Origin: Perna viridis
Lineage: Eukaryota
DNA: 64,000 nucleotides
NCBI GenBank assembly: GCA_037379345.1
Contig: CM074520.1
Location: 38,164,664 to 38,228,663, forward strand
Direction: 5' to 3'
The notes beneath the pieces were generated by a model. That model ran no database searches and was not told the origin of the DNA. It was given only the letters and a program-made list of their open reading frames with translations. Made by a program: the position numbers and the translations under genes. Of this stretch, positions 12,417 to 55,299 are shown piece after piece (the first letter of the stretch is position 1; each line of letters opens with the position of its first letter).

Positions 12417-12425
12417 ATTTCTCGG
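12417..12425 (+). CDS. Predicted 9-nt micro-exon ATTTCTCGG (duplication copy A; phase 2 = F-L-G)
   Basis: ccttttgtttttttttcag|ATTTCTCGG|gtaagt: long pyrimidine tract, CAG acceptor, consensus donor; same size and position as minus-strand exon 54771-54779. Confidence 0.7.
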
Positions 12426-12949
12426 GTAAGTTTTGATATTATATTATAAAATTATTTTATTTTCAAGCATACTTTCATGAATGATTTTAATGGGTTTGTT
12501 TTATCAAAGAAATGTATATTAAGTTATTGCATGTTAGACGAAAATTGTAATTTTAGAAATATGTGCTTACAAAAAGAATCCATTCCAACATACACTAATG
12601 TATTTTCTTAAACATATAATTGTGCACGTGGCGGCGATATTGAAACACGCGCCTGGCGACCTCGGATATGTTGACATGTGACAGATACGTGTGAATATAT
12701 AGAGTACGCCAAGTATGCAGCGACTATGCATTTGGTGTAAATGTAATATGTTTGAGACATTGCATGATTATACACGCACGATTTGAACTTTCTTGAGCAT
12801 TTGCTTTATAAAGCAACACAAGGTATCATCATAGGTATTTGAAGGTAATGAACAATATGCCAAAATTGAGGTATTTTTGCTCCATACAAAAAGAAAAAAA
12901 AAGTTAGAATCAGAATTTGATAGTGACTTTTAAATACCCCCCCCCCCCA

Positions 12950-12980
12950 GACACACACACACACACACCCACACACACAC
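12950..12980. repeat. (CA)n microsatellite
   Basis: direct reading. Confidence 0.9.
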
Positions 12981-15970
12981 GTGAATACATGAATACAAGA
13001 CCTACTTAAAGGGGCCATAATTTTAATTATTATTATAAGGCAGTTATAATTATTAGCATAAATCTTGTTTGTTCCCCATTTTGTCTAATATTGGCAAAAA
13101 CTTACATTTGATATCAAAATAACAGAAAATAGTATATGTGCAAACCCCTTCCCACAGAATCCAACTTCTGGTTTTTAACTCATCCACCAGAAGGTAACTT
13201 TTGCTGTCTTCAATTGACTTGTTTCCATTGTAGCCATTAACTCAGATATTATAATCTGATGATATTAGTATATGTTAACTTTTTTTGTTCAACTTGATGG
13301 GAATGAAATATTATTTAAATGTTTAAAAGATATCCAAAAATTCATAGTATGCATTTTGCCATGGTAATCATATTAAAAGAAATGTTGTCTTCAAATAAAA
13401 AAACAATAGCGTTGTGTTCAACTTAAACCAAAATATCATGACAGCTGCATTAACACAAAATGCTATTATATAAAAAAATAAATAAAATAGGATTGTCTAT
13501 TTGGTGATGAATTTAGTAGTTTTAGAACTAATTGATAAGTCAAAACGTCGATTAGCACAAACTATTGACATGTTTATCAAGCTTAATTAAACGGAAGTGA
13601 ATATTGTCTTTAAAGCACATACAAAAATAATCCAAGGAATGATCAGGAATTAAAACCTGCGCGAAAGCAAATACAGCACAAAAACCGCGAAAATTATGAA
13701 TCCACAGGAATAGTTGGCCGCTTGACATTCGGCATCTGCAATATCATGCATTTAAGCGTTCGTCCGTCTATCAAGTCACCAGTTGTTTCGGGAGAGCAAT
13801 GCATAAAACGTCACAATTAAAATTGAGGAAAGTTGAAAAGGCATGTTCAACCTATCTTGACGAAAGTTAGAAAAGACAAACCAACAACCTTTGACGTATA
13901 TCTAAAATTGTACACCATTTTGACATTTTTTTTGAAATTGGCATACAGTGTTTTTTATAGTATATAAATAATTTCTGCTCATTGTGTGCAAATAAAACAT
14001 TGGTATTTTCGAATCCTAATAAGTGTTTTAGAGAATATCAAATAAGCCGAAATGCAATAAAAGATGATATGTGTGTGATATACTTGTGTATTTGTGTTTC
14101 CATATAGAAATTAAGAGGTCATGAAAAAAGAGAAAAAAAATATAATATTTCAACCTGGACGATTAAACTGCATGTAACAATAATTAATATAACTTTAAAA
14201 CAAAAATATACTATTTCTTTCTTTTACATTTACATATCCAGGTCATACCACGTTACCATATTTAAAAATGGAATTGGGCAATGAGTCCTGAAAAAATCGC
14301 GGGAAATTTCAAAGTAAAATGAAAAAAGAGTCTAAATCTTATCTGCTGTACAAATTAAAAAAAACAATTTTCTATCTATTTATATACTTTATATATATTT
14401 CTTCTTTATATTGCATGTGTTGCTTGCGCTCAATAATGAACTCACTGAACAAGATTTATACAAAACATATGGATTTTCTTTTATCTACAAATATAAATTA
14501 TCGTTCCTATTAGTTTTGTACTTAATCGTAATTAACATATGTATTTCAAATTTGTTTTTTTTTTCATATTTCATAAAACTCAATACCAATGCCTTTCGAA
14601 ATGAGTTGTATTTGTTTAATTAGATAAACACACCTGTCTTATTCCTCCTATGATTAAGGATTGAACTACAACATATTTACGTTGATGTTGATTCTTTTTT
14701 TGCTTCGTAATATTTATTTTCACTTGCTGGGTGAAACAGAGTTTCTAGTTAGCTATTTGCTGCACAGTTCAAATAAGTTTTAGGAGTTTATTGTCTGTTT
14801 TATTTATTAATTTACTCTACACACGATTTAGTTAATGATGTTATTCCCTCTGTAATGTTCAATCCACTCATAAGAAGAAGCATTTACCTCTCTTATATTT
14901 AGTCAGTAGGAACTTATATTTTTAATTCTGTTCACTTTGTGTTTTGGATGTTATTTAGGTCAAGATGACCTAAGACGTACATTTTTATCAGGTACTCTAG
15001 CTTCTGATAGCGATAGAGTCACATATATTTTATTTTGACAGAGAGTACTTCATCAATTTCTGAAAAAAAATACCAATTTACCCAAGTATGAATATTTTGC
15101 ATCTATATTCAGTAATATGTTCTTGTCTCTTCATGCTGTTGGTGATACCGTGATGTGAAATAAGGATTATCATGGAAAACTTACATATAGACTGTAAACG
15201 TTAATCCTTCTCTTATAACTTAACACAAAGCATTACACGTTACAAGTAAAGTAGTGCCCCACCTGTATTTTCATCACGTCTTCATCTTGTTATAAGCGAT
15301 TAACAGCTTATCTTGAGGTATTTACGGGTTCGATACAAGCTGTTAATGCCACAGAAGCAGGGAACCATGCAATCTACATTTGCATTTAATTTACATTGGT
15401 CCAAGGACGTGTTTTTTTGTCTTTAATTCATGTATGTAGTCATGATAATTTGTATTGTATCCAACAGTTGTCCTATAGTTACATTTTGCCAATCAAACGA
15501 TGTTCTGTTCCCATTATATTTTACTGTGTACCATATCTTTTATTGATATAAACATATAATTTAGATTTTTCTTTTACAAACAAGTTATACTATTTCAATT
15601 TCTCTTGCTTTATTGGTTAAGATCCAAATAACTCATATATTATAAATTCATAGTTGAGATAGTTGTGATAATAATACACCTATAATTTATATTAATTCCA
15701 AACAGTAAAGAAAATGAATCCATAGATATGTCTTAACTAACAAAAGTAAACAGCATGTCAATGCACAATTTTTTTTTCTATATGTATTACTTTTAATTTC
15801 TTTTTTTTATTTTGACAAATTTGAAGGGAAAAATGGTCACTATCAACATTTTCAAGAAAATGAGAATCTTTACAATTTTTCAACGACACACTTGATGAAT
15901 CCTCGTAATCATTTTAATAAGTAGATTAAAACAGTAACTTCTGATGAATTCAAAAGAACCCCCCCCTAAA

Positions 15971-16002
<32 letters not shown>

Positions 16003-16019
16003 CAAACAAAAACAAAAAC

Positions 16020-16050
<31 letters not shown>

Positions 16051-27393: not shown

Positions 27394-28209
27394 GTCATGA
27401 CTATTTCTCTTTTTTGAAATATAGATAATGTTATCTTTGATGAGACATTCCAAATTATTTTATGATCATGAATAAGGACGAAAATGAGACAAGTGAAAAT
27501 CTGTCTTTTACTACTTAATTTGAATTGTTTGATATCCCAGTACATTTAATTGGATAAATATTTGGTGATTAATCTCAATTCATAGTTTGGCTTGTATTCA
27601 GCTGTTTACAAAGTAATATTTTATAAAAGATCTAACGATTTTATTGTTTTTTTATCTATATCATATATGGATGCATTTTATAGTTAAAACGCCCATTTAT
27701 CTTCAAGTTTATTCTATATAATAATACAATCACCAAACTGATGAAATCAAGATAGTAGTCAAAAGGACAAGTGTACATAACCCGGAATATTAGAACACTT
27801 CGGCATTTACTTAGTACAGGCATTTCATAATAAAAGGTAGATTAAACCAGGTTTTAATAGCTCACTAAACGTCACGCGTCCATCGCGATTCATCATTTCC
27901 TGAATATTTCAACACAAGTGAGTAGCATTTTTTATCTACTGCAAAATTGAAATAAGCGATCTAATTATATTAATATTTTATCTTAATCATTTTTATCCGA
28001 AAAACAAACAAACAAACAAACAAACAAAGCAAAGCACAAAAAAACAAAACAAACTAAAAAAAATTGAAAACTGTCAAAGGCGTCCAGTTAATTTTATAAA
28101 TCAGTGTCCTATAAACATGTGTGGAGTTATATTACAAAGAACCACATTGAGACTTATTTTGCCATTTCTTTAACTTGTTTTTTTTTTGTTTTTGTTTTTT
28201 TCGTTCCAG

Positions 28210-28224
28210 ACAGGGTGTTTTTTT
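28210..28224 (+). CDS. Predicted 15-nt micro-exon ACAGGGTGTTTTTTT (phase 2 = Q-G-V-F-L)
   Basis: tttgtttttttcgttccag|15 nt|gtaaat; same length, order and AC...T ends as minus-strand exon 53570-53584; donor only moderate. Confidence 0.55.
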
Positions 28225-29701: not shown

Positions 29702-29719
29702 GGATTGTAAAAAGTGTGG
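29702..29719 (+). CDS. Predicted 18-nt micro-exon GGATTGTAAAAAGTGTGG (phase 2 = D-C-K-K-C-G)
   Basis: gaccattttag|18 nt|gtaagt; 15/18 identical to minus-strand exon 52789-52806 while flanking introns are unalignable by eye. Confidence 0.8.
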
Positions 29720-30225
29720 GTAAGTTCGTTAACGAAACAGATGTGTAGCTTTACTGAACTATGTGTATACAATGAATGCTTTATTGAGTACATTTGGTTA
29801 TAGACCAACTAAGATTAGGTGAAATGAACACGTATAACAGATCTGAACTGTTTGAATTATTTCCTCTAACAAGACTTTTTTTAGACAAGTAAAACAAATA
29901 TCTTTTATTTACATTCCTTTGTTTTGATACGTATTATATTTTGCTAATAATTGATCCTTATCTTGTTTAAGGAAAAGAACATGGCATGATTATATACAAG
30001 AAAAAAGGTAAAACAAAGCAGTAGAATATACGAGAATAAAGGAAAAACAAAGCAGTAGATCAGTGATCATTTAAATGTTTAAATGTTACCAACACAGATG
30101 ACACTAGATAGTATCAGATGATTCAAACATTGTATATATGTGTGTAGTATAATAGTGATGTGTGTTATTGGGATAATGGACCTCGTTCCGTGTTATTATA
30201 TATATTTCTGTCTTCTTTTATTTAG

Positions 30226-30250: not shown

Positions 30251-31170
30251 AATACATTGAGTTTATTTCACTTATTGTCACACTGAGTTAAACATTGTGG
30301 AGTCAATCTTGCTTACATTGATTAATCGGTCAGAAAAAAAAAGACTTTGTATTATGTTGATTATTCATATGAGATTTTGGAGAAACAGGTAAAGATATAA
30401 ATAAGTAATATATATATATAATACTTTTTTTCAATTTTTTTCCCTTATATTTTGTGTCGGTGTAATTACACAACATTGTTGTTTATTTTTTTATATCCGA
30501 AATAAAAAGAATACTCATTTTTCTGTAAGAAGACAGTTTCATGTTCTTTTAATCTATTAAGTTACAGATTGTTTTTGTTGACCGAGCTAGTGATTAATGT
30601 TTTGTAATAACGAATGTGTTAATACTTCAAAGATAATTTGTTTTGTTTATTGTACAAGAAAAAAAATGTTTGAAAAATAGACACCTTTTGTCTATACCAA
30701 TTAATATTATTAAATTTAAAGAAAAACAAATTAAAATAGTAAATAAACATAACATGAAATTACTTATGACAGATTTGTGTTGTTGTAGTTCGTGTATTGA
30801 CCCGATTTGTATGATTTTGGTTGTTTTTTTTTTTTTTTGTTTTTTGTCAAATTTATTTTTTTAACAACTAGTGAATATAAGTATTAGTGAATACTTTTAA
30901 TCTATATATCTTTTATTTTATTGATAAATATAAACAAAAGTTTGTATATTTGACGTAAAGAGATAAGACAACAATTGCACCTGAGACACAAAAAAAAAAC
31001 ATCCAAATGGATATAGATATGTGTATAAAAATATGAAAAAAATTGTTGCATTTTTTTAATATGTATTAACTTTATTGTCCCAATTATTTAGAAAAATCAA
31101 ATTTTCAATAAAATCAAAACGAGATGTGTTTATTACTTGTTGCACTAAAGCGAGTTATATGATGTTATTT

Positions 31171-31345
31171 CATGCTCCCAGTTTTTGGTGGAGTCCGAGT
31201 TGCTCTTTTACTTTTGTTACTTTGTATGTATGATTTTAGTTATTTAATGTTCTTTGTTGTGTATGTCTGTTTTCCATGTCTGGTTTTTGTCCCTGGGTTA
31301 CATTTTTTGATTACCGCTATAACCTTGGTTCCCTTGATTACTCTT
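31171..31345 (+). mobile_element. Penelope-like element 3' terminal fragment
   Basis: catgctcccagttttt...ggttcccttgattactctt. Confidence 0.88.
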
Positions 31346-33789: not shown

Positions 33790-34070
33790 TTCACCAATTT
33801 TGTGTTGTGTATTCTTTTAAAGGATCAGGACACATTTGTTCCAAGATACACATCGTATCAGATATGCATATAATACTTTTTCTCGTAAGTTCGTTTAGAG
33901 TACAGATGTATACCTTTACTGAACTACATCGAACATTTTATTGTGTACGTTTTATTATAGACTATGGCCAGTACGATTAAGTGAAATAAACACATAAAAC
34001 AGATTAGAACTAATTGAATTATTTGCTTCAAATTAAATGGTGTTTCAGGACAAGTAAAACATATATATCA
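33790..34070 (+). pseudogene. Diverged duplicate of 29600-29900 from which the acceptor and the 18-nt micro-exon are deleted
   Basis: gttccaagataca...taatactttttctc|gtaagttcgtt...cagatgt...ctttactgaacta is colinear with 29641-29760 but lacks ~29685-29719. Confidence 0.7.
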
Positions 34071-36947: not shown

Positions 36948-36999
36948 CATCAAAAATAGAATATAATAAAAATTGAGAAAAAAAAACAATCTACATGGG

Positions 37000-37659: not shown

Positions 37660-37696
37660 TTATGAACAAAGTTCAACCCCACCACATATCTTGCAC
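37660..37696 (-). CDS. Candidate terminal exon (R)CKICGGVELCS*
   Basis: aatttagacag acceptor; phase matches the donor of 38430-38520; repeats the CKxCG motif. Confidence 0.4.
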
Positions 37697-38429
37697 CTGT
37701 CTAAATTATAAGAAATAGACAATTTTATTCTACGGTGATATTAAAGTTTAGGTTCTGATATGTTGCAATTTTAGTGTAATTGCAATTTTGCTGAATCAGC
37801 ATGTTTAATTGTTACATAGAATTGAAGGCTTTGCACGTGTGTCGGTAATAATTCACAACTATTGCTATTTGTTAATTTTCAATCGTTAAACACTGAAGAG
37901 ATTTTACAGACATTTGACTATTATATGTATTTACATATTTCAACAATAATTAAATATCGAGTTGTGGGTGCCATTTTCCTATCTTACTGCAAATTCCACG
38001 ATAAATGAAAAAAATGCAATGGTTGATATTTTCATCCCGGTGAGGTTGTTGTCTCTTTAACATACACACCATACCTATTTTCGTTATATGTATTATTGTA
38101 TAAATGATGATAAGTTTGGTAAGGTCTTTTACTCCCTCCCCCTTTTAATTTATGTGTTTTTGTTTTCTTTTAATTCAATACAGTATTATGCACGTTCATA
38201 CTACGATGGTGAATTTACCAATAAATTTGGAATCAATGCCTCTATAAAGGTTTATACACTTAGAAAACACAACAATCCATGAGTATATATTCAAAGATAG
38301 TTCACTGTATCGACGCTAGTGCATACCAAACATTGAAAACGAACAAGATTTTTGAATAGCATTCCATTTACAATGTAACATATACGGATTTTTCATCAAT
38401 GAAAGATATGATGAAAAACATACACTCAC

Positions 38430-38520
38430 CTTGCTGGGACCAAAGGGTATATTGATATAGAAGGTATTGCTTTGTTGTCTACCTTTTCAATAAATTCGTT
38501 TGAAATGTAGCAGACCGTTC
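38430..38520 (-). CDS. Candidate 91-nt exon TVCYISNEFIEKVDNKAIPSISIYPLVPA (phase 1 to 2)
   Basis: tgtttgtttatgtttaaatattag acceptor, open frame, consensus AAG|gtgagt donor. Confidence 0.45.
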
Positions 38521-39823
38521 CTAATATTTAAACATAAACAAACATGCTTGACGAAACCAAACGAATACTTGATAACAATAAGAGAAAGTGATGGCATTTG
38601 CTCGTTTCTGGAAAGTTTCTTTAGCTTTAATTGCGTTTTGTTCTCGACACTGACACAAAGTTGTTATGAGTGCGTTTATAAAACGTTGGACACCCGTTTA
38701 TGTATATTGCAAGGACAAAAGTGTTAAGTGGTATACCGGTAACTATCATTATATAAGTATGATGTGATTGTTAATGGTTAGAGATTACAAAGGGCAGTTG
38801 TTGCGCCGATCTATGAGGGTATGGAAAATGGGTGTGTAATTTACATGCACATGAGAGAACGTAAAAGTCTCTTTAAAATAAAAAAAAAATGTATCGTCCA
38901 TGATAAAAGTGGAGTGGAAGCAGATGACTGAAAAAAAAAAAAGAAAAAAAAACTTGTGAAACGCACATTCTTCCAAACAAAAACCGCGGGCGTATTGTCT
39001 GCCCTGAACAGGTTTGTTGATAAAGGTTACCAATTTCAATTATTTGATTATTCTTTGAACCTTATTTTACAAATAGAGATATTAGTCCCCTAAATGCATT
39101 ACCACATAAAAAAAAAACTGTCTTTTTTGACATTGTATGACATCACATTTTGTCTTTGTAGTACTTATTGTCACTACTCCAAATCAAGTTTGCTGGAAAT
39201 ATGAAACTAAAACTTTTGATGATAATTGCATTCTTCAATATATTCTGAGCTTTTTTTTTTCACTAACTGTGAAACTTTTAAGTGGATATCCCAGCTTGTC
39301 TATATGGTGTATATTTAGGTATTCCACCAGCTGTATAAATGATTGAACAGTATGGCGTGTTTATTTGTTGTTTCCGTTCATTTGTTTTATCTGTCATTCT
39401 GCTACAATTATGTATGAAGTCCTTAAAAGGCTTTGAGACCACAATTGTGGTTGATTTTCGATTGCTATATGAGCAAAACGATATTGGGTGTGGCTAATGT
39501 GTGTGTGAATACTGCCCACTTTGAATGATATAAACAAACACACGAAACATGTTGATGTGTAACAGATGTTTTCATTCATTTCATGAATAAACATCAAACA
39601 CATATTTCATCAAAAATATTAAACTTTATGTTTTAGAAAAGTTATATTATATTCCTGAAAAATCACTTACACACGTACACGGTAGCATGGCCACGCGTGT
39701 AATCATGTACGAAAACAGACAAAAACAATCGTCGATGAATGAAACATTGTACATGTCCATATTTAGTACACCGCGACAGTATTATGCAAACAACTATTGT
39801 CATATCTAACATCCTTCTACTTT

Positions 39824-40011
39824 CTGTAAAAGTACTTTAATACATAGATCAGGGAAGAAACAGAAGTTCATGGATTCCTGAATTCGTGGTTTTGAGGTTT
39901 TCAGTACACACATCAATGGAAATCTACTACTCGTTGGGAACTAAATTTCGTGAAATTTCCTGCCTAAGAAAACCACGAAAATTGGTACCACGAATAATAG
40001 TACTTTCACAG
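39824..40011. mobile_element. Tc1/mariner-type MITE (CTGT.AAAGTACT TIRs)
   Basis: ctgtaaaagtact ... agtactttcacag|ta; internal ttcgtggtttt / aaaaccacgaa inverted motifs. Confidence 0.7.
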
Positions 40012-40169
40012 TAATTCACTTTTTCCTTCATAATATATAATACAAAGGACTAGTTCTTATTTTCACTGATAAACGACCATTTCAAGAGACAATACGAAAA
40101 GTGTACAGCCAAAAAATGACAAATATGGGAGTGTAGGTTTATTATTAAAGGTCACGAAAATGTTGTCCT

Positions 40170-40300
40170 ATTAAAAACAAAATTAATCACAGAAACTCGA
40201 GTTTGTCATTAATTCACTATGGACTGACAATTTATCGGTATTTACCAAAAATATCAGTAAATTAATGATAAACTAGTGTTTTGTGATTTATTTCTTAATT
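40170..40300. repeat. Imperfect inverted repeat (~45-bp arms)
   Basis: aatcacagaaactcgagtttgtcattaattcact versus agtaaattaatgataaactagtgttttgtgattt. Confidence 0.75.
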
Positions 40301-41649
40301 AGTCTTCTAAGGTGTGTATATATATTCTTTGTAGGATCCTCCCAGGGTACTGGCACGTTTCTCCCAGTTTCCTTGTTATGGTCATCAAAACATGCCGTGG
40401 TAAACACATAAAAACCAATACACATCAATCAGAACTTTATAGATCTGGTATAAGCCTTTATGAGGATGCTGCTTATATTCATTCGTAGGGTTTCATTGTT
40501 TACATTTAATGGTTTTGGACAAGAATGATGTCTAGCTTGTTAAGGTTTAGTGTATCCTGGCGATGTCTTTACACTTACACCTCGACTTTTTATTTTTATA
40601 TTAGCATTGCTGCTTGGAAGATTAATAGTATCTACAAACTATTGTTTTCAGGTGAAGTAAGATGAATTTCCATTGTACGTTGTTGCTTTTATTTGTACCT
40701 GTGGATTTGAATTCGTTTATTCTGCTGTATAAATGTCATCATACTTCCTTTAAAAAAAACTAATTGAATAATACAGGGCTACACGTGCTACAAACTTTCA
40801 TTTATGAAGAGTAATATCATTGAATGCAAAATTGGGCAAAGGATAATTAAGCCAATTGCAGCATGCTTCTTTTGCCATTCGAGCTATTTGTGTCATAAAT
40901 GCAGTATCTATAAGCTTCTATAAGGATTTTCCTTATATCATTTGAAATTTAATAAGTTAACTTTTCTAATTTACTCTTTGGTACAAAAATTGTAAGGTTG
41001 TGTCGTGTGATATGCTCAAATATCAAATCTTTATTAAAACCTTTTCTATTGTTCGGTTCTCTGAAAATGAAAGTGTTTATTTTTACTAACCTTTACCAAA
41101 TGGAAGAGCTTAAACGAGCTTATCCACGGAAAACCCTTATATTATAAAGAACATGCTTGAAACATTAAGAGTAATCACACATCTACAATCATTTGAAAGG
41201 ATGCTTTGAACTTTGTTTGAAGGATTATTGCCTTCATGGAAAATGAACCATCAAATAAAATGAATTCAAATCTATTGAAATTGAGGAGTCATATACTACG
41301 AAATGATATATTTATGAACAAAAGAAGAATGTTAGTTTAAACGCAATTAAACAAATATGCACAACTTTAAAAGCAAAAATGCATGTTGAAAAGGCTCATA
41401 TTTTACAGTAATACCCAAACCTTTACACTCAATATTTCATATTATGATATCCAATATGCAGTTTAATCCTGTAATAAAACACATTACCTATGACCAGTAT
41501 GCAGGTCACCTTTACATAAAGTTGTTCAGTTGTCAGTGTATTCCAATCAATGGTAATTAAATCAAATTAATAGTATAAACGTAAACGTATACTTTGTAGT
41601 TTTATCTTGATATGTCATACAAACCTTTCAATTGACAGTGTTAAATAAA

Positions 41650-44600
41650 TCTATGTCACGTCGTGGTAATTTAACTGAAAGTTCCGATGGAAATAATGTT
41701 AATGATGATTAGGAAATTCTGAAATTATTTTCCGGCTTTTCACACCAGTCACGAAAATCGAACACTGTAACGGAAGTTGCAACGGTTTAAAAGGTCAGTG
41801 ATAATATTCAAATGGAGGCTACACCGGTTGTAACTGATGTCACAGAAGGTGAGAAATCGACAGATAAAGTCTATGTTAAAAAGTGTAAAAAACACTTCTG
41901 AGGGAAAAGCAGCCAGTGCTAGAAAAAGGGAGGTCGAAAATAATAAAAAAGATGGGAAAGCTTCATCAGGTAGTAGAGATGTGGTCAGCCTCACAACCTA
42001 GAAGTGTTTCGAACAAAAACACATAAACTCAAATAGAACAAGCCGATTTATTAACATCACTAATTGATTGGTTGACAGATACTTTAAAGACTACATTTGT
42101 CAGAAATTCGAAGGAAAAAATAAGTACGTTCGAGAAAATTGAGGACAAGAAGCTGTAACACAAATGAATTATTTTGTTGATAATGACTCCTCTTATGATG
42201 ACGAGCCAGATCATACTCAGAATTTTAATATTTTTAGTGATGAAACAGAACAGAACAGGTGGTTTTTGATCCAGATGAAAATTATTTCGATTACGAACTT
42301 CCCGTGATTTTTTAAAGGGGATGATAAATTTGGACAGAATACCAGTGATTCTATTTCTAGAGAGTGAGAATTTTTGTGCAAGGAAAGCTGACATCGCTCC
42401 CATTACTAAGTATTTGAAGATATTTTCAAATTGTAATAGTCTCGTAGTACCTTCTGTTAACCCCTGAAGTGTAGCAATACCTAGATAGAAGGTCTAGGTC
42501 AGCTGACTTGGGTCTCCAGACTATACAGAAACTTTAAGTGTATGGTATGATACCAGTGTTAATGAAAGCTGAAAATCTCAAATCAAAAACTGGAGATATT
42601 AAACAGATGAGATGTGTCTAAAGCTATTACTATTATTTTTAATGTTCATTTGGAACTTTCTGTTACGAGGAAGATGAGTCTTAAACCATTCAAAGATAAA
42701 AAAAAAGTTTCATCAGTTCTGCAACCACAATGAAGAGATAGGTATCAATCTTTTTGGAGATGATATAGGAAAGAAATTGAATCATATTAATGAGGCAAAA
42801 ATATCTCAAGTGTAAGAGTAAGAGGCAGAGGATATGGCCAATATCATACACAGTAGCAGAACAGTTTTTTGTTAAGAAGAAAAGACGAACTCCGTCAAAA
42901 TTATCAGTCAAAGAACACAATTCGCAAGAGACAGAGGCCAAAGCAGGTTTACATGCAGTCAAAAGAAAATAGTTTTAAAGGTGAGAAAATGTATCAAGTG
43001 TAAAAATACAACAGGCAATTTGAAGATTTTTTTCTTTAAATGTAATAACGTTACAAGTGATAAATGGGTGTTATCAAGTGTAAAAGGATATAAAATTGAG
43101 TTTGACAATTGTCCACATCAAACTAAAACTGTGCCTCCCAATTCAAATGATGCTGAAAAAGTTTCGATTCAGAAAAAGGTAACTGACATGTTGAGTAAAG
43201 GAACAATCATGAGGTACTTCAAGAAGAAAATTAATTTATTTCTAATATTTTTTGGTAAAAAAAATTGAAAGTACAGACCAGTTATAAATTTGAAAAAAAA
43301 ACAAATGAGTTTATCTCTTATCATTTTAAACAAGAGGATTTAGATGTTATCCTTAAAGGAATAAAAAGGGACAGTTATTTTACTTCTTTAGATTTAACTG
43401 ACACCTTTTGTGTCGATTGCAATGGATGAGACTGCTAAAAATATTTAAAATTTATTTTGAATGATGAGCTTTAACTTTTCCAATGTCTTCTTTTTGGCCA
43501 GGCATCTTCGTCTCGCGTTTTCACTACAGTGCTCAAAGTTCCCTTGATTACTCTCTTACATAGATGACTCATTGGTACAGGCAGATGGTTATGGATGTAG
43601 TGTCCAAATTACAGGGTAGGTCAAATCATTTATTGAATCTGTTGGCGCTCATATCAATTATGGAAAATCGAATTTTATTATACCTCAGATTATTATCTTT
43701 TTAGGATATATTATTGATTCAATTCTGTTCAAAGTTTTTCTACCAAATGATAAGATACAGAAAATTATTGAAATGTCAACATTGATTTTAAGGAATTCAA
43801 AAGTGTTGATAAGAGATGTAGCAAAGCTTATAGGGTTATATTATAGTGCCCGGTATGCTATAACAAATGCTCATCTTTTTCATAGGTATTTGGATATTGC
43901 TAAACCTCAAGCTTTATAAGATTCAAACAATGATTACATTTTTTATGTCCCTAACTGATAGGAGTAAAGACGAAATGCAATGGTTTTCTCTGTGTTAACA
44001 TATTAATGGAGTTCATATCCAAATGAAATCAGATAGTTCTACAGGTAGCTATATAAATAATCAAGGTGGTTCAGTGTTATTTGTGTTAGAAATTACTAAA
44101 TACATTTGATTTTGATGTATAAATAAAAAAAAATATTTATATCTGCAGTATATTTTCCAGGAAAGGAAAAAGTGGTACCTGATAATTTATCAAGGTGTTT
44201 GAAGGATACCTCAGAGTGGAGACTAAAGCTTCAATATTTAGAAAAATATTGACTCATTTTTTTAATATTTTTTGTAGCAGAAATAGATTTGCTTACTTCT
44301 AGACCTTTTTGTAAGTTGGTATCCCAGTCCTCATGCTTGGGCGACTGATGCTCTTTCTATTACATTGCGATATATCAATCCATATGTTTTTCTTCCTTTC
44401 AGTCAGATTAGCAGAGTTTTGATCAAGATCAAGGAGTACAAGGTAAGAAAAGCAATTAAAAATAGTACCAATGTGGACCACTCAGATGTGGCTTCCAATG
44501 GTTTTAGAATCATTTATAGCTTCTTTAATAAAGTTGCCACCGTGCGCGGATTTACTAACATTAGTACACAACAAGCAAAAATGTTCTTTGTTGTGTATGT

Positions 44601-44905
44601 CTGTTTTCCATGTCTGGTTTTTGTGCCTGGATTATATTCTTTTGAATACCACTATAACCTTGGTTTCCTTGATTACTCTTTCAGGCAAACCAACAAACAT
44701 TATATTACATTCTTGGAGAAAGTCCACCAATATCCAATATGAACATGTTTGGAGAAAATGGTATTGTGGTGTCATAAACGACAGCCTGATTCCCTTGCTT
44801 CACATATGAGTTTGTTTTTTGATTATTTATCCGTGTTATTTCAAGAGGGAAAGTCTTACAGCTGTATTAATTCACATAAATCTGCAATATTATCAGACAC
44901 AGGCA
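41650..44905 (+). mobile_element. Decayed DIRS1-like tyrosine-recombinase retrotransposon (gag remnant, RT, RNase H, MT-like domain, start of YR)
   Basis: broken frames give TSDKWVLSSVKGYKIEF, YRPVINLK, HFKQED, FTSLDLTD, SSRVFTTVLK, YIDDSL, FLGYIIDS, SYINNQGG, FPGKEKVVPDNLSR, PYVFLPFSQISRVLIKI, PMWTTQMWLP, SWRKST..QYEHVWRKW, GKSYSCINSHKSAI in DIRS order; many stops and frameshifts. Confidence 0.88.
44581..44680 (+). mobile_element. Penelope-like 3' terminal fragment nested in the DIRS element
   Basis: atgttctttgttgtgtatgtctgttttccatgtctgg...ccttgattactctt. Confidence 0.85.
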
Positions 44906-45135
44906 ATGATACTTTTCAAACAAATATTACTCGGAGTGGCGATAATACATGTAAACGATGCAAATATTGCGTGATTTCGGTTATTCTCGAACTCGCCGGC
45001 GAGATTCTAAAATTAATATTGATTGCACAATACTTTCTACATCCTAATGCATTAAATGTGTTTGATAAAACATTTACTTTACTTTTTTTCTTTTCGGAAT
45101 GGGAGAAGGCATCTGACAACGGAAAATAAGTCGAT

Positions 45136-45232
45136 GCAATGGGGGATGGAGCAATGGGGAATGGGGCTATGGGGAATGGGGTATGGGGCAATAGGGAACG
45201 GGGGATGGTGCAATGAGGTATGGGGCAAGTGG
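45136..45232 (+). repeat. G-rich ~7-bp degenerate repeat (ATGGGG(A/C)(A/T))n
   Basis: gcaatgggggatggagcaatggggaatggggctatggggaatggggtatggggc. Confidence 0.85.
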
Positions 45233-45926
45233 AAAGTTTATCTTATACAGGGACTGTATTTAATTTCATTCTGAAGCATCTGTGACGTAAATATTTGTTA
45301 ACTGCTTATATAGAGAAAGAGTGGAAAAATTTTCCGTAGTGCATTTCAGCTAAATTTGACCTATCAATATCTTAAAAAAAATAAATTACAAACACTTTGA
45401 TGGTTATTTCTCGTGGTTATCATGTATAATTAATTGGTCAATGCAATAAAATCTCTGCGTTTTTTTTCCTGTATGTGCTACGCCTTATATACATTTTGCC
45501 CGATTCTTATACGAATTTTTCTTGAATTGTTAATGTTATTTACCACGCATGGAAAATGGTTAAAGACCAAATTCAAAAGAGAAAAACAAATATGTAAAAA
45601 AGGGACAGCAAATATGTTATGAATTGATTATCTGGTAACCTACCAATGCAATGTATTTCAGTGGTCATAACATGAAGTGGTAAAACATGTTTTGTCACAA
45701 TCATACTGTATAAATAATTCTGCTTCATTATATATTGAAGAAATCATACAATTCGACATTTTGCACGTTACTTTCTATATAAGATATACATAGTATATCT
45801 CTAGTGGAACTAAATAAATTGTGCGAGATAATTCATTTAGTTTTGTGCCCAAATGTACAAAATTTGCAACAAAGAAGGGGGTCCCAATCCTCGTAAACTC
45901 CCTTAATCCGCTGCGATTTTTTTCAA

Positions 45927-46093
45927 NNNNNNNNNNNNNNNNNNNNNNNNNNNNNNNNNNNNNNNNNNNNNNNNNNNNNNNNNNNNNNNNNNNNNNNNNN
46001 NNNNNNNNNNNNNNNNNNNNNNNNNNNNNNNNNNNNNNNNNNNNNNNNNNNNNNNNNNNNNNNNNNNNNNNNNNNNNNNNNNNNNNNNNNNNN
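45927..46093. other. Assembly gap (N run)
   Basis: run of n. Confidence 1.
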
Positions 46094-46600
46094 TGTTTCA
46101 ATCAATGCATTATGTGTCTATGACAAATACATTTTGTCTAACACAACGGTAAAAAAATATAGCATCAGTCATTTTTTTGTCAATATTACCAAAATGAAAT
46201 GTTTATGTAGAACTATGTCAACACTTTTTAGGTTGGGTTAGCCAAAAAAAATGTCGATGTCAACGCTTTTAATGTTGAGTTAGAAAAAAAACTTTTTCCA
46301 GTGCAGTAGACAAAATGTGTCTAACGCATATAAGCATTGTGTTAGACTTTTTGTGTCCTTCTCAACACTAAATTTGCTTTGATTTTTTTAAGGCAACCTA
46401 CTTTTGTGTCGACTCTGACAAATTGTGTTTTTAATGAAGTTGATATGGTCAAAATGTGACCAAGCAAAACGAAATAATCGTTTAAGTAGTCTATATTTGT
46501 ATTCCTCAATAATATGTTGACTGTACATGGTCACTATATTAAATGTTTCAGCCAGCAGTTACATACTTTTAAGGCTTAATATTTATGTACGTGTACATAC

Positions 46601-46614
46601 TTGTCACTGGCGTT
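46601..46614 (-). CDS. Candidate 14-nt micro-exon AACGCCAGTGACAA (phase 2 to 1, T-P-V-T)
   Basis: gatttttcatttcataattag|14 nt|gtatgt; would bridge the phases of 52789-52806 and 38430-38520. Confidence 0.3.
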
Positions 46615-47800
46615 CTAATTATGAAATGAAAAATCACACAACCTGTTTAACATGATTTTCGATGAACCCGAGAATCAGATTAAAAGATGGCAGGTAGATT
46701 ATGGCCATTAGACTAATACACAAGTGAATCACGTTTAATTAACAAATACAGGTGATAATCAAACTAGATGCTATGTTATTTACGGGTACACACGGAATTT
46801 TACCGGAATTACATACGTTGAACACGATTGGGATTATTACATGTACATGTTGTAGTTACTATCGGTAGTTAATCTAAAAATTATTTTTATATTGTTTATA
46901 TCTCTTTTCTTATCTGTCCAGAGACAGAATTAGTGATCTCGGGTATTTATAACCTCGTCTAAATACTAACATTGTCTAAAACTATCCAGAGATAATCAAA
47001 CACTAGTATTATACTCAGTCAGAATCTGAGCCGTAGCAAAAACATATTCATAACAAATAATAACAGTATATATCTGGTCCTGTTCTTCTAATTCAAAAAG
47101 GCTTCTAATGCGTTTACCGATTTCCTCCATACATGTAATAGACAATTTTTTCTTGTATTAACAGCGCAAAAAATGAAGACTAATCTGAGTAATCAAGTTC
47201 TGACAAGTGGCAAAAATATACTGAAAGAGTCCATCTCTCAAAATCTAATAGACTGGCCATTGAATTAAGAAATTCTCAACGTTATAAGTTGTACAGTATA
47301 TTGCCATAAATGAAAATACAAAGTCGTTTGATTTTTTTTAACAGAATTACCGAATTCCAGTCAGCTTTTAACCCTTCATATATGTTGGTAATATAGGTTT
47401 AAGGGGTGTGATTAAACACCACTCAGGTGTATTGAATACACCTATGACTTATAAAAGAAAAAGAGATCAAAACATTTAAATACTTTAAGTCCCTTGTGCT
47501 GGCGGTTTTGGCGTCCTTAACAATCCTAGCTTGCGTTTGAATCTTACCGTGGCAAATTCTAGACTACAACAAATGATGAAATTTATATTGCAATGAGCAC
47601 ATTTCTTGTTTGGTTAACTGTTTAATTATCCAAAAACTAGTATAAAAAATCTGTGCTTCGTTTCACCAATATAATAAATGTCATAACGTTTTTGTTATTA
47701 TAAGATACATTGTGTTAAGTTAATTGAAGACTGCCTACATCCTTACCAACTTACCCGAATACTATTGTCAAGCAAAGAAGGCGGCTGCAACCTTTTACTA

Positions 47801-47977
47801 NNNNNNNNNNNNNNNNNNNNNNNNNNNNNNNNNNNNNNNNNNNNNNNNNNNNNNNNNNNNNNNNNNNNNNNNNNNNNNNNNNNNNNNNNNNNNNNNNNNN
47901 NNNNNNNNNNNNNNNNNNNNNNNNNNNNNNNNNNNNNNNNNNNNNNNNNNNNNNNNNNNNNNNNNNNNNNNNNNNNN
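47801..47977. other. Assembly gap (N run)
   Basis: run of n. Confidence 1.
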
Positions 47978-50204
47978 TTTATTATTATTTTTTTCTCGTT
48001 TGTTTCAAAGCGTCTGCGAAGGCCGTTTTTGTTTATGTTTTTGTTTTTTGTTTTTTTTGCAAGTCAAGAGGCATCTATTTGAAAAAGTTATTTTTTTCTG
48101 TTTTCGGTGCAAGAATGCCACGCCAATGCGTCAATACTTCATTTCAACCAATCAAAATCAATGAAAATGCATTTTAATTCATTGATTAATATGAATAAAT
48201 AAACAAATGTTCGCATAAAATTTAATTTCTTTGTAAGAGCTGTTCTAGTAGTGGTTAGTATTTGTTGGACAACAAATCACAATTAAAATTGTTCTAAAAT
48301 GTAGTAACAATTGTCTAATACGATTGATGGTTCTTTCACTGTGATCAAAAAGTATAAACTACTGTAAGATAATCATCTTTTTGTTCAACAAAAGAGCTGT
48401 CTGCATGTCTCACCAAACTGCAGTGAAGGAAGGAAAACAATAGTGTGAAACTGTTTACGAGCATAGGCGTAGTAATCATATTTGAATTTTGCGAAACTTT
48501 TAGTTGATCTAAAATTTGTATTATTTGTTGAAGTTAACTTTATTTAAACTTTTGACTTTTCAATATTATATATAACATTGCCACACAATAAATAAAAAAT
48601 CTTTCTAAAGGGAATCATCCACAAAGTTTTAAATGCAAGAATGGCAATTTTTACATTTAATTTTATTTAAGGCTACAACTCTACATATTATACCACAACA
48701 CTAAATTAATTTCCCTGATTATAAAATGAAGTCCTCAAAAGGCTTTGAAATCACAAGATTGCCACATAAGAAGAACGCATTACAATTAGATTGATTTGTG
48801 TCTGTGTAACCTACCTTCGACGAATATAGTGGGAATATTAGGATATTGTAAGGCACCAAAAACTGTCCTATTAGAATCGAAATTAATCACGATAACTCAA
48901 TTTCATCATCGTTTACAAGGCTGGACCTCGATATTGATATTCAAACCATCGCTATTGGTAATTTTTTTTTTTAAATGACCAGTCGTTGTAAAACAGTAAT
49001 AAAATTGAGCTTCCTTTATTTGTTATTTACATGTACCACACTATACAAAACAATTGTGAACTAAATACTTTTGTTCATTGCGCAAACAATGAGTTCAAAA
49101 CTAGCGGAAAGGAACGTCAAAGTTTTAAAAGACGGATAAAATAAAGCAATGAAAACCAAATACAACAAAATAGGAAACATTGTCTGTGTTACGCAAACCT
49201 TGTTTACCTTGATTATTAATAAAAATATGGCATTGTTAATCTTCCTCTTTTTAAAGATAAGTCGATTTTGGTATCGGCCATTTTCTTCAATGTGTTAAAT
49301 ATTATTCTGCAAAGGATGCATTTTCTGCCAATACTGCATGTGCAATATTGTTAATCGATATTTGGCAGTTATTTTCAGAATAACTTGGGAACTACGTATT
49401 GCCTTTAGAACTGTAAACAATATGACGACCTCCGTGTCGATGTCGCTGAGAAAATTAGTCATACATTTGTTTCTGCATGTAATATTTCTCCTAACTGGAA
49501 ATAATAATTTGAATATTGAAATCGTGACTTGTTTTATGTGATGTATAAATAAATGGTATTTTTGTGTTATTTTGTAACCGTATGCTGGTCTATCCCTCTC
49601 TTTATGCATTCCACTGCAGACGACCGGCAGTCGTCCAAAAATATCTTCCGACAGTGAAACGGAACCTGTATCGCAATTTAACATGGACTGGACGCTGACG
49701 TTGAACATCCAGAATCTTAATGTTTATATGCATCTACCGCCAAATTCGCGTGCGTAATGATCCATGTGTAAAACAATTCATTTATATTATTGTGATAGGT
49801 GATTTTCACGATATAAAATTCAAAATAAATCATAAATTTACGAACTCATTTCAGCGCCCATTGTCAACCATTTCTTCATAAAAGTGCGTCGCCGGTTTCG
49901 CAAAAGAAGAAATACGGATCATTTTTCGGCATTAAATCACAAAGAAAATATTTTTTCTTAAATACTTTTAAAGTCATTAACATTTATAAAATATATGCAG
50001 ATTACAAACACATATAGCATTTTCTCCAGAATGTATTATTTTGAAATGAATGGGCAGACTCGCACGGATTTGCATACCCATACCGTCGCTAACATATTAC
50101 TCCACGCTGCGTCAATAAAGGCGCAATATAGGTGCTTTTTGTAAACCACGGAAAAAGGCAGTTTTATAGAAAAGACTAAAACCAATATTGTTTTTATTTG
50201 CAGG

Positions 50205-50369
50205 ATAAGCACAATACAAAACCACTGTCCTAGCATATCGGCAATATGGGTTACTCGGCGCGAAACGGGGGTAAATCGCTCCCCAAAGCCTCGTGAAACC
50301 CCCGTTTCTTGGCCTCACTCCCATATTTTCGATATGCTAGGATACTGAATTTGTATTGTATCTTTATTA
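50205..50369. mobile_element. Palindromic non-autonomous element (~65-bp imperfect arms)
   Basis: caatacaaa...tcctagcatatcg..aatatggg...gaaacggggg versus cccccgtttc...cccatatt..cgatatgctagga...tttgtattg. Confidence 0.7.
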
Positions 50370-51019
50370 GTTAAACAATAAAATTTCTGAATAAAATTAT
50401 ACATTGAAATATTGATTAATTGATAATTGTTAAATTCATAATGACAGAAATGGGAAACCGTTCAGGACAAGGATGATTGAACAATTGACTGAAATCATAC
50501 AGACATTCACCCTATTACACTCTAAAGGAATTTAAGCGTTTTCGGACTTATTTTCATTGGAAAAGTGCTACTAACAAAGACACATTGGACATAAAAAGAA
50601 TGCGTCCACGCTTAAAGCCAAAAGACATTGTCAGCATCATTAATGTCAAGAAATGCACGCAATGTCAGACATATCTTGACTGATAGACAAATCGTGCTTT
50701 ACTATATGTTATAACAATATATTCAACAGCTTTAAATAATGCGTTATTTCACATATAATTGGACTGTAAACATACTTTCCAGGTTGATAAAGTTCTAAAT
50801 TAACTGAACGTTTTGAGAATTTAAGACATGATAAAACATGAAACTTAATTAGAAGTCACTAATAAAATATGTCAAGTGATTTGAATAAAACAACACCTTT
50901 TTTACTGACATGGTATTTTATTTTAAGTTTTTATTTAGAAAAAAACACAATAACTATTCATTTACTTGATTTAAATATACAAATTCAGTTTGAATTAATA
51001 TTTGAGCTTCATCCATTTT

Positions 51020-51880
51020 TCAAGTTCACTCCATACATAGGTTTTATGGCAAGTTCACTCAATACATAGGTTTTATGGCAAGTTCACTCAATACATAGGT
51101 TTTTGTTCACACTAACATATGTTTATGCCAAGTTAAAAAATAAAACTTCTGAATAAAATTATACATTGAAATATTGATTAATTGATAATTGTTAAATTCA
51201 TAATGACAGAAATGGGGAAAATATGTCAGAAAATATGTCAAGTGATTTGGATAAAACAACATCTTTTTACTGACATGGTATTTTATTTTAAGTTTTTATT
51301 TAGAAAAAAAAAAAAAACAATAACTATTCATTTACTTGATTTAAAAATACAAATTCAGTTTGAATTAATATTTGAGCTGCATCCATCTATAACTTTTATG
51401 TCAAGATCACTCAATATATTTTGTATGACAAGTTCACTCAAAACATAGTTTTTAAGAAAAGTTTACTCCATACATACGTTTTATGCCGTCATTCCATACA
51501 AAGGTTTTTTTTTCAAGTTCACTCCATACATAGGTTTTATGACAAGTTCACTCAAAACATAGTTTTCAGGAAAAGTTTACTCCATACATACGTTTTATGC
51601 CGTCATTCCACACAAAGGTTTGTTTTTTTTCAAGTTCACTCCATACATAGGTTTTATGGTAAGTTCACTCAAAACATAGCTTTTAAGAAAAGTTTACTCC
51701 ATACATACGTTTTATGCCGTCATTCCATACAAAGGTTTTTTCAAGTTCACTCCATACGTAGGTTTTATGGCAAGTCCACTCAATACATAGGTTTTTGTTA
51801 AGTTCACACTAACATATGTTGTATGCGAAGTTCACACTATACATATGTTTTATGCCAAGTTCCTTTTATGCATAGGTCAT
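51020..51880. repeat. ~28-bp satellite (caagttcactccatacataggttttatg) with ~120-bp higher-order unit, plus local duplications
   Basis: direct reading; repeated translation in ORF 51421-51801; 50862-51015 repeated at 51229-51385. Confidence 0.9.
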
Positions 51881-52407
51881 ATGTCGACACTCATTGCTTA
51901 GTTGTCAAATATATTAATTTTCAAATCATTATGAAGTTACAAGTCTTTTTTATCAATCCTACACAATTACATGCATTGATATACCAATATGTATCACCTT
52001 TTCTCCACAAAGCCGATGCCATGTGTCTTTCCTCCTGCAAAATAGTAGTATTTTGTTACTTTAACGACAATATAAAACTACATTGATATTATACAGGGAT
52101 ATTAAAGTTCATTGAAAATAACAACCTAGTAAACTACATTTGTTTTTCAATCATGATATCTGTTGTTGGTACCTTCTGTGTACTTTTCTCGGTATGTACC
52201 ATTATTACCATTATATCTCAACACAAAATATTGATGTTGCCACATGTATGTTTCATGTCTCCGGTGCACTCCTGTCTCTGTTTAATATTGAAAAAAAGTT
52301 TTACGAAACAAATTGAATAAAACAAGTGACAATTTCAGTGCTAATTTGGTCGTATAATTACATTCAAGTTGATCACCGGGTTTTTTTTTTTTTTTTTTTT
52401 TTTTTTG

Positions 52408-52464
52408 CTTATATGTTCTTCGTTGTGTATGTGTCTGTTTTCCATGTCTCATCTTTGTCCCTGA
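52408..52464 (+). mobile_element. Short Penelope-like 3' UTR fragment
   Basis: atgttcttcgttgtgtatgtgtctgttttccatgtc...tttgtccctg. Confidence 0.7.
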
Positions 52465-52788
52465 ATCGCTTATCGCAGATACATTGCAGCTCTGTCAAAA
52501 ACTGTTTTTCTAACATTCTATATACAAATTCTGAACAAATCCAGTGATGCAGAGATTAATTAATGGTCTTTTCAAATAGAGAAAGCATCCTTGAGTGAAA
52601 TTATGTTGTAACATTGGTACGTTTTTAACATGCATGGGTCTGATTTTTCCCATTTTGCCTGATCGTACTTAGAAAGAAAATATTCATCCTTAACAGGTGA
52701 AAACATGTGTGAAATAATTAATTTTATTGTAGAGTGCTGTATACGCGAAGCCACTGTAAAAATGAATCAGTAGCGTAAATATACTCAC

Positions 52789-52806
52789 CCACAACGTTTA
52801 CAATCC
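52789..52806 (-). CDS. Predicted 18-nt micro-exon GGATTGTAAACGTTGTGG (phase 2 = D-C-K-R-C-G)
   Basis: cgttttgtttttag|18 nt|gtgagt on the minus strand; paralog of 29702-29719. Confidence 0.8.
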
Positions 52807-52886
52807 CTAAAAACAAAACGATTTCTGATTATAGATATTATTTATTATTACTGATTATAATTTTTTTTTTAAGATAATTTAAGATA

Positions 52887-53138
52887 AGTTTCCTCGTTTG
52901 CCTATCCCGGGCTTGTCTTTTATGAGCAACTCGGCGGGTGTTTTTAGAAAAGCAAAGGGCGCTTGTCCTACCGGTGCACCTAGTCCATGCTCCCAGTTTT
53001 TAGTGGAGTCCGAGTTGCTCATTTGCTTTTGTTATTTTGTATGTATGATTTTAGTTACTTGATGTTCTTTGATGTGTATGTTTATTTTCCATGTCTGGTC
53101 TTTGTCCCTGGATTACCTTGGTTCCCTTGATTACCCTT
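52887..53138 (+). mobile_element. Penelope-like 3' UTR/terminal fragment
   Basis: matches the reverse complement of 62151-62420. Confidence 0.9.
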
Positions 53139-53569
53139 ACACAAATGAGAAAAAACATCAGCTGGGTATAGTTCGTTTTTCTCCTGGTTTATTACGATTA
53201 TTCTTTTAAATACACAAATATAGTTTTTCTTTCAGCGTAATTCACAACTGATTGGTCAATGATTTTCAGATACATAACCATGAAAAAAATACTTTTCATG
53301 TTTGTGATTTTTACGTACGGCAATGTATCAATGAAATGCTACTTAGGTGTAAAATCGTTTGTTCTTTACAATATTCGTTAATTGTGTATATGAACAAAGT
53401 GGATTATCAATTGTATATTTAGTGTGGGTTTTTTTTTTTGTTGTTGTTATTGATGACGTATGTATATAATATGTTTAGATAAGCAAACAATGTGAACTAA
53501 AATTCCGAAAACAGATACGAGGCAAATTGGAAGACAAAATAATTAAAGATGATAGCAAAATGTACTCAC

Positions 53570-53584
53570 AGTCTTTCGCCGAGT
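53570..53584 (-). CDS. Predicted 15-nt micro-exon ACTCGGCGAAAGACT (phase 2 = L-G-E-R-L)
   Basis: ctttcatttctcgtttaag|15 nt|gtgagt. Confidence 0.68.
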
Positions 53585-54770
53585 CTTAAACGAGAAATGA
53601 AAGCATTCAGTTGACAACTTTGTCAATGGTCTATTTAGTAGTCCCTTGATTATATTGGAAAATTTGTTACAATTGGTAGAAATACTTATACATTTGAACA
53701 CTTACATCTACGTGGTATTCTATTTGTAGTAAAGATCAAGATAATATTTTGTTAGTGTACAAACTTTTGGCATTTACTCACAGATAGTTTTTAATTGTGA
53801 GCAGGTTTTGTGAATTAACGATTCACAAAATGTACAATGCCAAGAAGTTGGTTAGGCGAGCTTTACTTGGTCAAACATTTTAAAGAAAGCCTGGTGATTT
53901 AAATTCTAATGGTTAAATTTTAAAAAAATTAAGTCTTATTCCTTCATCAAAGCCATATCTAGTTTGAAAATATTTTAATGGCGTACTGCAAATGGCGGAC
54001 TTTAATGACGTAAGAGTACTAAGTTAGTTTAAGGATAACACTTTGCCCTGATGAGAAATAAGCAGTCAAATTTTTTTTACACTGAACTAAACAACACGTT
54101 TATAAAGCCATGCATATATATATGAGATCGTGATACCATGTCTATCAACAAGTACCCATTACACGATATATAGTACTTCACTGCAGAAAAAAGCGCGGTA
54201 ATTCAGTCAGAAAGGGGATATACCGCAATTCACGGCAAAGTGGTCAATTCCAAGGTCTACGCGATCTAAAATCACATTTTAAAAGTTGGTATTTGACAAT
54301 CAGTGTCAAGAATTAAACGATGATTGATATTCTGGTCATTTCGACATTTATTTGGCAGCCAAAAATTAAATAGCGTATTACAATAACTTAATACGTTAGT
54401 TTTAGATGTATTTTAACAAAGGCAACGACAAAATGGTTCACAGCAGAATATCATTGAAAGCAATTTAAAATTATCATTGGAATTTCCAGGTGCTATTTTT
54501 TAACGACAAGGTATCTTCTAGAATATTTTTTTTTTCAATTGCTTAACCATAGAAAATATCCGAATAATTAATGAATTGTTCGCTTCTGGCTTATACATGT
54601 TCCTAATATGCATGTACAGTATATATGAAACGGCTAAAACATATCTGCATTATCTTGATGTTCTCTTTTGTGGGTAAACGAAAACTTTATAAGTGTTTCA
54701 TATTAATTTAGAAAAAAACAGTTGGTCATAATGATATTATTGCAGATATTATAACTATATTAATACTTAC

Positions 54771-54779
54771 AAAATGTAG
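54771..54779 (-). CDS. Predicted 9-nt micro-exon CTACATTTT (phase 2 = Y-I-L)
   Basis: gattgtttctttttttttag|9 nt|gtaagt. Confidence 0.7.
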
Positions 54780-55022
54780 CTAAAAAAAAGAAACAATCAT
54801 TACTTCACTTTAAAAATAATAACCATCAAATCATACAAAATGTTGAATTAAATAGTCTATCAATTTTGTAGTTCTTTGTTTGTTTGTTTGTTTTATAAAT
54901 GTTGTTGTTTTGTTTGTTTTCTCTTTTTCTTCATTTTTTATTCACATTTTGGGGTCTAAATTAAGTATGCTATATCCCAATTAGATATATTTGTCAGTAT
55001 TAAACGGTGTTTTAAATAAACA

Positions 55023-55151
55023 NNNNNNNNNNNNNNNNNNNNNNNNNNNNNNNNNNNNNNNNNNNNNNNNNNNNNNNNNNNNNNNNNNNNNNNNNNNNNN
55101 NNNNNNNNNNNNNNNNNNNNNNNNNNNNNNNNNNNNNNNNNNNNNNNNNNN
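55023..55151. other. Assembly gap (N run) inside a predicted intron
   Basis: run of n. Confidence 1.
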
Positions 55152-55281
55152 ATTTATATTCAAATATTGTGTCATGACAAAACAGTTAACTATTGTATAT
55201 TCACAAATCAGTTTAAATATTCAAATATAAAAATTATTTATGTTTGATTTGTATGAAACAACAATGGTTTAAAATATTTAC

Positions 55282-55299
55282 CTTCGACGTGGATTTTTA
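55282..55299 (-). CDS. Predicted 18-nt micro-exon TAAAAATCCACGTCGAAG (phase 2 = K-N-P-R-R-S; phase 1 = K-I-H-V-E-A)
   Basis: ctgtttctttattccag|18 nt|gtaaat with AAG exon end. Confidence 0.62.

Follow-up and report, generated by a model that had tools for sequence, protein, structure and literature searches.

Introduction

In schistosomes, micro-exon genes (MEGs) carry most of their coding sequence in tandem symmetric micro-exons set between much longer introns; their products are small and rich in lysine, and the genes lie in multi-copy clusters that arose by duplication (PMC10526429, PMC4350168). Genes made almost wholly of symmetric micro-exons have so far been described mainly in schistosomes, of which they are regarded as a peculiarity; no paper on micro-exon genes in molluscs came up in our literature search, and those that it did return all dealt with schistosomes. 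Here we analyse 64 kb of genomic DNA from what is apparently a mussel (G000:C10:38164664-38228663; "the window", in which positions are counted from the first letter), where two convergent genes of this type, gene A on the plus strand and gene B on the minus strand, would lie; a related pair on contig C11 is referred to as lineage C. With a probability that we put at about 0.72, A, B and C are a real, small, multi-copy and lineage-specific family of symmetric micro-exon genes arranged around a conserved core.

A preliminary description of this locus, made from the sequence alone, had called the genes MEG-like, and the comparison holds for their architecture alone (18-9-15-18 nt and a last exon in B; 45-18-18-9-9-18-18 nt and a last exon in C; all in phase 2). 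As in schistosome MEGs, the proposed coding sequence is spread mostly over tandem exons of multiple-of-three length with long introns between them, the predicted products are small and lysine-rich, the genes form duplicated multi-copy clusters and, among the A copies, exon sequence is changing faster than the introns. Unlike schistosome MEGs, these genes occur in an apparent mussel rather than a flatworm, and no sequence relationship is expected; their core exon is strongly conserved instead of hypervariable; and scans for exons running from an ATG to a donor site yielded no signal peptide and a single weak candidate exon, which belongs to A copy 1.

Conserved neuronal micro-exons, a second point of comparison, are cassettes of 3-27 nt inside large conserved genes. 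The exons described here are like them in being very short and frame-preserving with strong splice signals, and unlike them in that they constitute all that is known of the exon chain of a small multi-copy gene; a large host gene with exons of normal size was not detected, no larger conserved exons are common to the lineages, and the long open reading frames (ORFs) are transposon remnants only.

Micro-exons in the window

All eight short segments that the preliminary description had proposed as micro-exons are present in the window when its sequence is read directly. Each is preceded by a pyrimidine tract and AG and followed by GTAAGT, GTGAGT or GTAAAT, and the lengths are as claimed: 18, 9, 15 and 18 nt on the minus strand and 9, 9, 15 and 18 nt on the plus strand. 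The minus-strand segments form gene B: an 18-nt exon in phase 2 at 55282..55299 (K-N-P-R-R-(S), identical in both paralogous copies), a 9-nt exon at 54771..54779 (Y-I-(L)), a 15-nt exon at 53570..53584 (L-G-E-R-(L)) and the 18-nt core exon at 52789..52806 (D-C-K-R-C-G(G)). On the plus strand, gene A has a 15-nt exon at 28210..28224 (Q-G-V-F-(L)) and an 18-nt core exon at 29702..29719 (D-C-K-K-C-G(G)), the latter identical in all three A copies discussed below. Its 9-nt segment at 22525..22533 (F-L-(G)), also on the plus strand, is a candidate of uncertain status, duplicated at 12417..12425 (+); the two lie one in each unit of a tandem duplication (3954..22700, +; two units of ~10.1 kb, 88-95% identical), the duplicate being in the upstream unit.

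The simplest objection to exons this short is that they are chance pairs of AG and GT in AT-rich DNA and that the likeness between the plus and minus strands is coincidental. Polypyrimidine runs are indeed common at the 31% G+C of this genome, and A and B have nothing in common in the sequence of their 9-nt exons, but the candidates are rare and clustered. A scan of both strands (128 kb of strand) for at least 11 pyrimidines in 15 positions, AG, 3-30 nt and GT[AG]A[AG]T returned 27 candidate micro-exon sites, all eight segments among them. In simulation, third-order Markov sequences yield a mean of 14.4 candidates, 5.4 of them with a multiple-of-three length, and on the minus strand above position 52000 the four gene B exons are the sole candidates of multiple-of-three length, where ~0.1 would be expected in 2.5 kb. 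Since the scan thresholds were fixed after the picks were known, the exact probabilities are rough, but the clustering is still clear.

Four runs of N interrupt the window. One of them, at 55023-55151, falls within the gene B intron between the 18-nt and 9-nt exons; because both of its flanks are found in the same order and orientation in two ungapped B paralogues, where 125 nt take its place, the gap leaves the reading frame of gene B unaffected. Two others, at 45927-46093 and 47801-47977, fall in the stretch that separates the 3' end of gene A from that of gene B.

A family of three lineages

The core exon was searched for throughout the 723-Mb genome with the pattern AG-N-GAY-TGY-AAR-NNN-TGY-GG-GT, which specifies D-C-K-x-C-G together with both splice sites, and the reversed pattern served as a control. 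There were eight matches and no control match, against an estimated ~0.1 expected from base composition. The search thus recovered the cores first described and showed the family to be larger than had been seen, with three lineages instead of two genes. When the pattern was loosened to admit different residues in place of the D or the G, matches did not rise above control level.

Six of the eight matches form three convergent A(+)/B(-) pairs over ~430 kb of contig C10, and since their flanks are 93-97% identical, these pairs are recent segmental duplicates. The remaining two are the lineage C pair, which lies in the arms of a palindrome on contig C11 (G000:C11:28179001-28259000, L023-L030) with at least 20 kb per arm, an identity of ~81% between arms and a centre near local 40.4 kb. 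The flanks of the A, B and C cores do not align with one another, so the three lineages must be old, and what they have retained is the exon with its exact borders.

Paralogy of A and B, as originally claimed, is borne out by the core exon, the phase and the last-exon motif that they share despite unalignable flanks. The exon-by-exon likeness is less even than had been thought: the 18-nt exons agree at 15/18 positions at the DNA level, but the 15-nt exons share only a Gly and a split Leu codon, and the 9-nt exons only their length. Similarly, the order 9/15/18 is firm for lineages B and C, but on the plus strand the 9-nt exon is confined to A copy 1 and is absent from A copies 2 and 3.

Two further observations concern these regions. 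One arm of the C11 palindrome carries ~8 kb of extra transposon insertions. In the C10 cluster, 44 kb beyond the window, there is an 18-nt segment between AG and GTAAGT (G000:C10:38272317-38272341, +; L012) that would encode Y-C-K-K-C-(D/E); the 1.5 kb examined for it held no matching last exon.

Reading phase and last coding exon

Substitutions among the core exons discriminate between the two phases in which the exon is open. A and C differ at three sites, and one further site differs between the two C copies; when the exon is read as D-C-K-K-C-G (frame 2), each of these four changes is synonymous and at a third position, whereas the same four would alter residues in the other open phase (frame 3). 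Differences between B and A are confined to one codon (K to R). Because the A/C differences are synonymous in one frame only, the reading is DCK[KR]CG, which settles in favour of the preliminary description its reading of the exons in phase 2 as a CKxCG peptide.

In A, B and C alike, an acceptor 252-754 nt downstream of the core exon is followed by the one base that finishes the Gly codon, and then by what is probably the last coding exon. In gene A (29972..30011, +) it reads K-R-T-W-H-D-Y-I-Q-E-K-R, with a stop at 30009-30011; in gene B (51959..52034, -), where acceptor, phase, motif and contig ends all point to it, R-K-D-T-W-H-R-L-C-G-E-K... with a stop at 51959-51961; and in lineage C, K-S-T-F-H-Y-Y-Q-Q-D-G-K... 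and then a stop. The three lineages thus share the motif G-[KR][KRS]-(D)-T-[WF]-H, in which several identical residues are specified by different codons. Translated in six frames, the window has only three instances of the string [KR][KRS].?T[WF]H, two of them being the last exons of A and B, and a six-frame scan of the 80-kb C11 region gave the same result. The motif strings had no match in the searchable literature.

Upstream of the core, resemblance continues at a lower level. The preceding exon reads Q-G-V-F-L in A, L-G-E-R-L in B and Y-Y-G-A-I-L in C, with x-G-x-x-L in common and, in each lineage, a Leu codon that the intron divides. B and C also have a 9-nt exon upstream of this one, at the same place in the chain, and, farther up, an 18-nt exon starting K-x-P. 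On the minus strand at 55486-55500, 190 nt before the first of the B micro-exons, there is an exact K-Q-P-S-N match to a lineage C 18-nt exon; having no AG/GT flanks, it was rejected as an exon and either arose by chance or is the dead copy of one.

An independent test in lineage C

When one palindrome arm was scanned by itself, lineage C yielded a succession of micro-exons in phase 2 with lengths of 45-18-18-9-9-18-18 nt, every one with a gtaagt donor. Over these exons and the last exon, the other arm differs at 14/189 nt (7.4%), as opposed to 18.1% over all aligned columns (binomial p=2e-5); it has kept every gtaagt donor and lost one acceptor (AG to AA). That the exons diverge less than the aligned columns at large indicates purifying selection on them. 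Given candidates that are rare and clustered, eight genome matches against none in the control, core substitutions that are synonymous only, a last exon common to the lineages and, in lineage C, exons better conserved than introns, chance pairing of splice-like sites is scarcely credible.

Transcription

Four runs from three studies, available as assembled contigs, were aligned to 51900-57400; that the runs are of RNA is a guess. The introns of this interval are covered by collinear unspliced contigs at a depth of 2-8. Contigs with a depth of 15-21, or 3-7x that of the introns, cover the B last exon (51900-52035) and end at its predicted acceptor, and the unspliced contigs begin at 52006, which gives an overlap of exactly 30 nt (k-1) with those ending at 52035. 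A break of the same form occurs on the acceptor side of the B 15-nt exon, where contig X4-19 ends at 53584 and the unspliced X4-20 begins at 53555, again overlapping by 30 nt.

De Bruijn assemblers break contigs where spliced and unspliced molecules diverge. Variation among paralogues is not the cause of the break at 52035, since the B paralogues show no difference near 52036. The breaks at two predicted acceptors are indirect support for splicing, short of proof. Because the deep last-exon contigs carry exactly the five variants of B copy 3, in which the stop follows right after ...R-L-C-G-E, the expressed copy is most likely B copy 3 and not the copy in the window. All listed contig joints fall within a transposon fragment at 52447-53118.

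Raised contig depth at ~56200 was considered as a sign of a further exon and rejected, the sequence being a dispersed repeat (56130-56320) with at least 32 copies genome-wide; this repeat contains a CCAAT box beside a perfect TGACGTCA palindrome.

Instability of gene A

Exon content varies between gene copies. In A copy 2 the 15-nt exon has kept its splice sites and differs at 5/15 nt, between flanks that are ~95% identical, and in A copy 3 the region of this exon is missing. The last exon varies among copies by a 35-nt indel, a change of poly-A length and several non-synonymous substitutions. Both the K-R (leaving G-EI) and the 35 nt have been lost from copy 2, and copy 3 has the altered poly-A length. 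An ATG at 22472 in copy 1 (also at 12364), from which the frame runs on into the 9-nt segment, is a weak candidate start: the two may together be a hydrophobic first exon, of which the 9 nt would be the end, or this may be chance. Such instability could mean that the A copies are adapting fast, as schistosome MEGs do, or that they are decaying.

Taken as decay, it would fit a once-functional family of which only relics remain, turning into pseudogenes within segmental duplications and seen in no more than background transcription. The losses in A copies 2 and 3, the acceptor changed from AG to AA in one C arm and the absence of observed junction reads are all as such an account would have it. 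In gene B, by contrast, every exon and splice site is intact in three copies; the C exons are constrained across a palindrome that has diverged by ~18%; and the excess of contigs over the B last exon, ending as it does at the acceptor, also speaks against such an account. We consider it improbable that the family consists of relics.

Three other observations bear on the surroundings of gene A. A 6-nt segment, TCAAAT, at 3019-3024 (+) has splice-like flanks conserved in all three A copies and may be a further A exon; in copies 2 and 3 it recurs at P2p 16369 (L032) and P3p 18554 (L036), respectively, and precedes the A chain there by 1.5-2.2 kb. At 33796..34066 (+) there is an old, 67% identical copy of the sequence on either side of the A core exon, with the exon and its acceptor missing. 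A tblastx comparison suggested an ORF conserved between A and C at 30261-30389, which was rejected as chance: it is out of frame with the C last exon and frameshifted in copy 3, and a protein search with it returned 0 matches among 1.8 billion protein representatives.

Discussion

If A, B and C are a family of micro-exon genes, the window would contain two of its members in convergent orientation, with coding sequence lying nearly all in symmetric phase-2 micro-exons of 9-45 nt between introns of 0.25 to several kb. Spliced as drawn, these genes would encode a small Lys-rich peptide with one CxxC pair, its core reading x-G-x-x-L / D-C-K-K/R-C-G / K/R-K/R/S-(D)-T-W/F-H (spaced slashes marking exon borders); beyond the core, a short tail that varies would lead to the stop. 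Duplication would account for the growth of the family: the split into A, B and C would be old, C would have been duplicated in inverted orientation on C11, and the A/B pair would have been triplicated recently on C10. The gain, loss and resizing of in-frame micro-exons would have altered the family besides.

Several points weigh against this account, the last two against the form of processing considered below. Neither for gene B, whose 8.7 kb of upstream sequence contains no recognised exon, nor for lineage C, by ATG...donor scans, could a first exon, start codon or signal peptide be established. No exon-exon joint between the proposed exons was found in the contigs over 51900-57400, but since pieces of 9-18 nt are beyond placement in such an alignment, the missing joints are no evidence against splicing. 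Among the three C10 copies of gene B the exons are no better conserved than the introns, a comparison that at ~5% divergence has no power. The A copies, differing as they do in exon content and tail, may be decaying. Lineage C has K-S after the Gly and lacks a dibasic site upstream; and the conserved K-K or K-R inside the CxxC pair is awkward for a prohormone.

A possible explanation for the failure to find first exons is that the micro-exons belong to larger conventional genes, either as their 3' end or as alternative terminal cassettes, and that the main exons of these genes are outside the sequence covered here. Such genes would also explain why the C chain extends upstream with 45-nt exons and no clear start, and why gene B appears to stand alone in the sequence above it; a candidate upstream B exon at 61775 was dropped, splice-site and other support being absent. 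Against such genes, a tblastx comparison of the 80-kb C11 region with the window found no shared normal-size coding exon, only transposon remnants; the window has no ORF of at least 90 amino acids besides reverse-transcriptase remnants; and the head-to-head C pair has only ~20 kb of each arm before the palindrome centre. We judge that this explanation is unlikely to be right, and return to a family of small micro-exon genes as the better account.

What the product of such genes might do is suggested by the residues that adjoin the core. The invariant Gly is directly followed by a basic site in most copies (G-KR in A1 and A3, G-RK in B1-3 and G-KS in C1 and C2, with G-EI in A2), and in B an R-R lies 14 residues upstream. 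Together, these features would suit prohormone-like cleavage to a Cys-amide peptide, which we offer tentatively as a possibility that we hold to be somewhat unlikely. The predicted peptide resembles the precursors of amidated neuropeptides and prohormones in the Gly with K-R, R-K or K-S straight after the core, in its shortness and in its Cys pair; unlike them, it has a basic pair within the CxxC, no upstream cleavage site in lineage C and, in A copy 2, a lost basic pair after the Gly, and the scans turned up no signal peptide. A more far-reaching version, and one that we consider rather doubtful, is that a mussel has evolved a micro-exon family independent of that of flatworms, in which modules of 9-45 nt are shuffled, duplicated, lost and possibly skipped, and whose peptide, ending in L-D-C-K-K/R-C-amide, would be a new signalling or defence peptide of bivalves.

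A second, unrelated case of this architecture in a mollusc would show that it arises repeatedly, and would provide a free-living, experimentally tractable system in which to ask why. Because both ORF-based and standard spliced-alignment annotation miss such genes, the small-peptide repertoires of bivalves may be undercounted; the core exon with its splice sites is a simple handle for finding relatives.

Other features of the window

The window matches no Rfam family. Remnants of a retroelement, recognised by a YIDD-type reverse-transcriptase motif in ORFs, lie at 26573-27453 (-) and 62543-62914 (-), and also at 52889-53135, 31166-31315 and 62192-62414. Many related fragments of this element occur in the window and in the C11 region, and contig depth over 52820-53187 reaches up to tens of thousands. 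Tandem arrays of an 11-nt unit occupy 7214-8358 (~103 copies) and 17832-18339 (~46 copies); other arrays are found at 57449-58573 (52-nt unit, ~22 copies) and 51394-51862 (29/117-nt unit). A direct tandem duplication of 1.5 kb, at 22695-24193 and 24191-25688, has an identity of 99.7% and is either very recent or an artefact of assembly.

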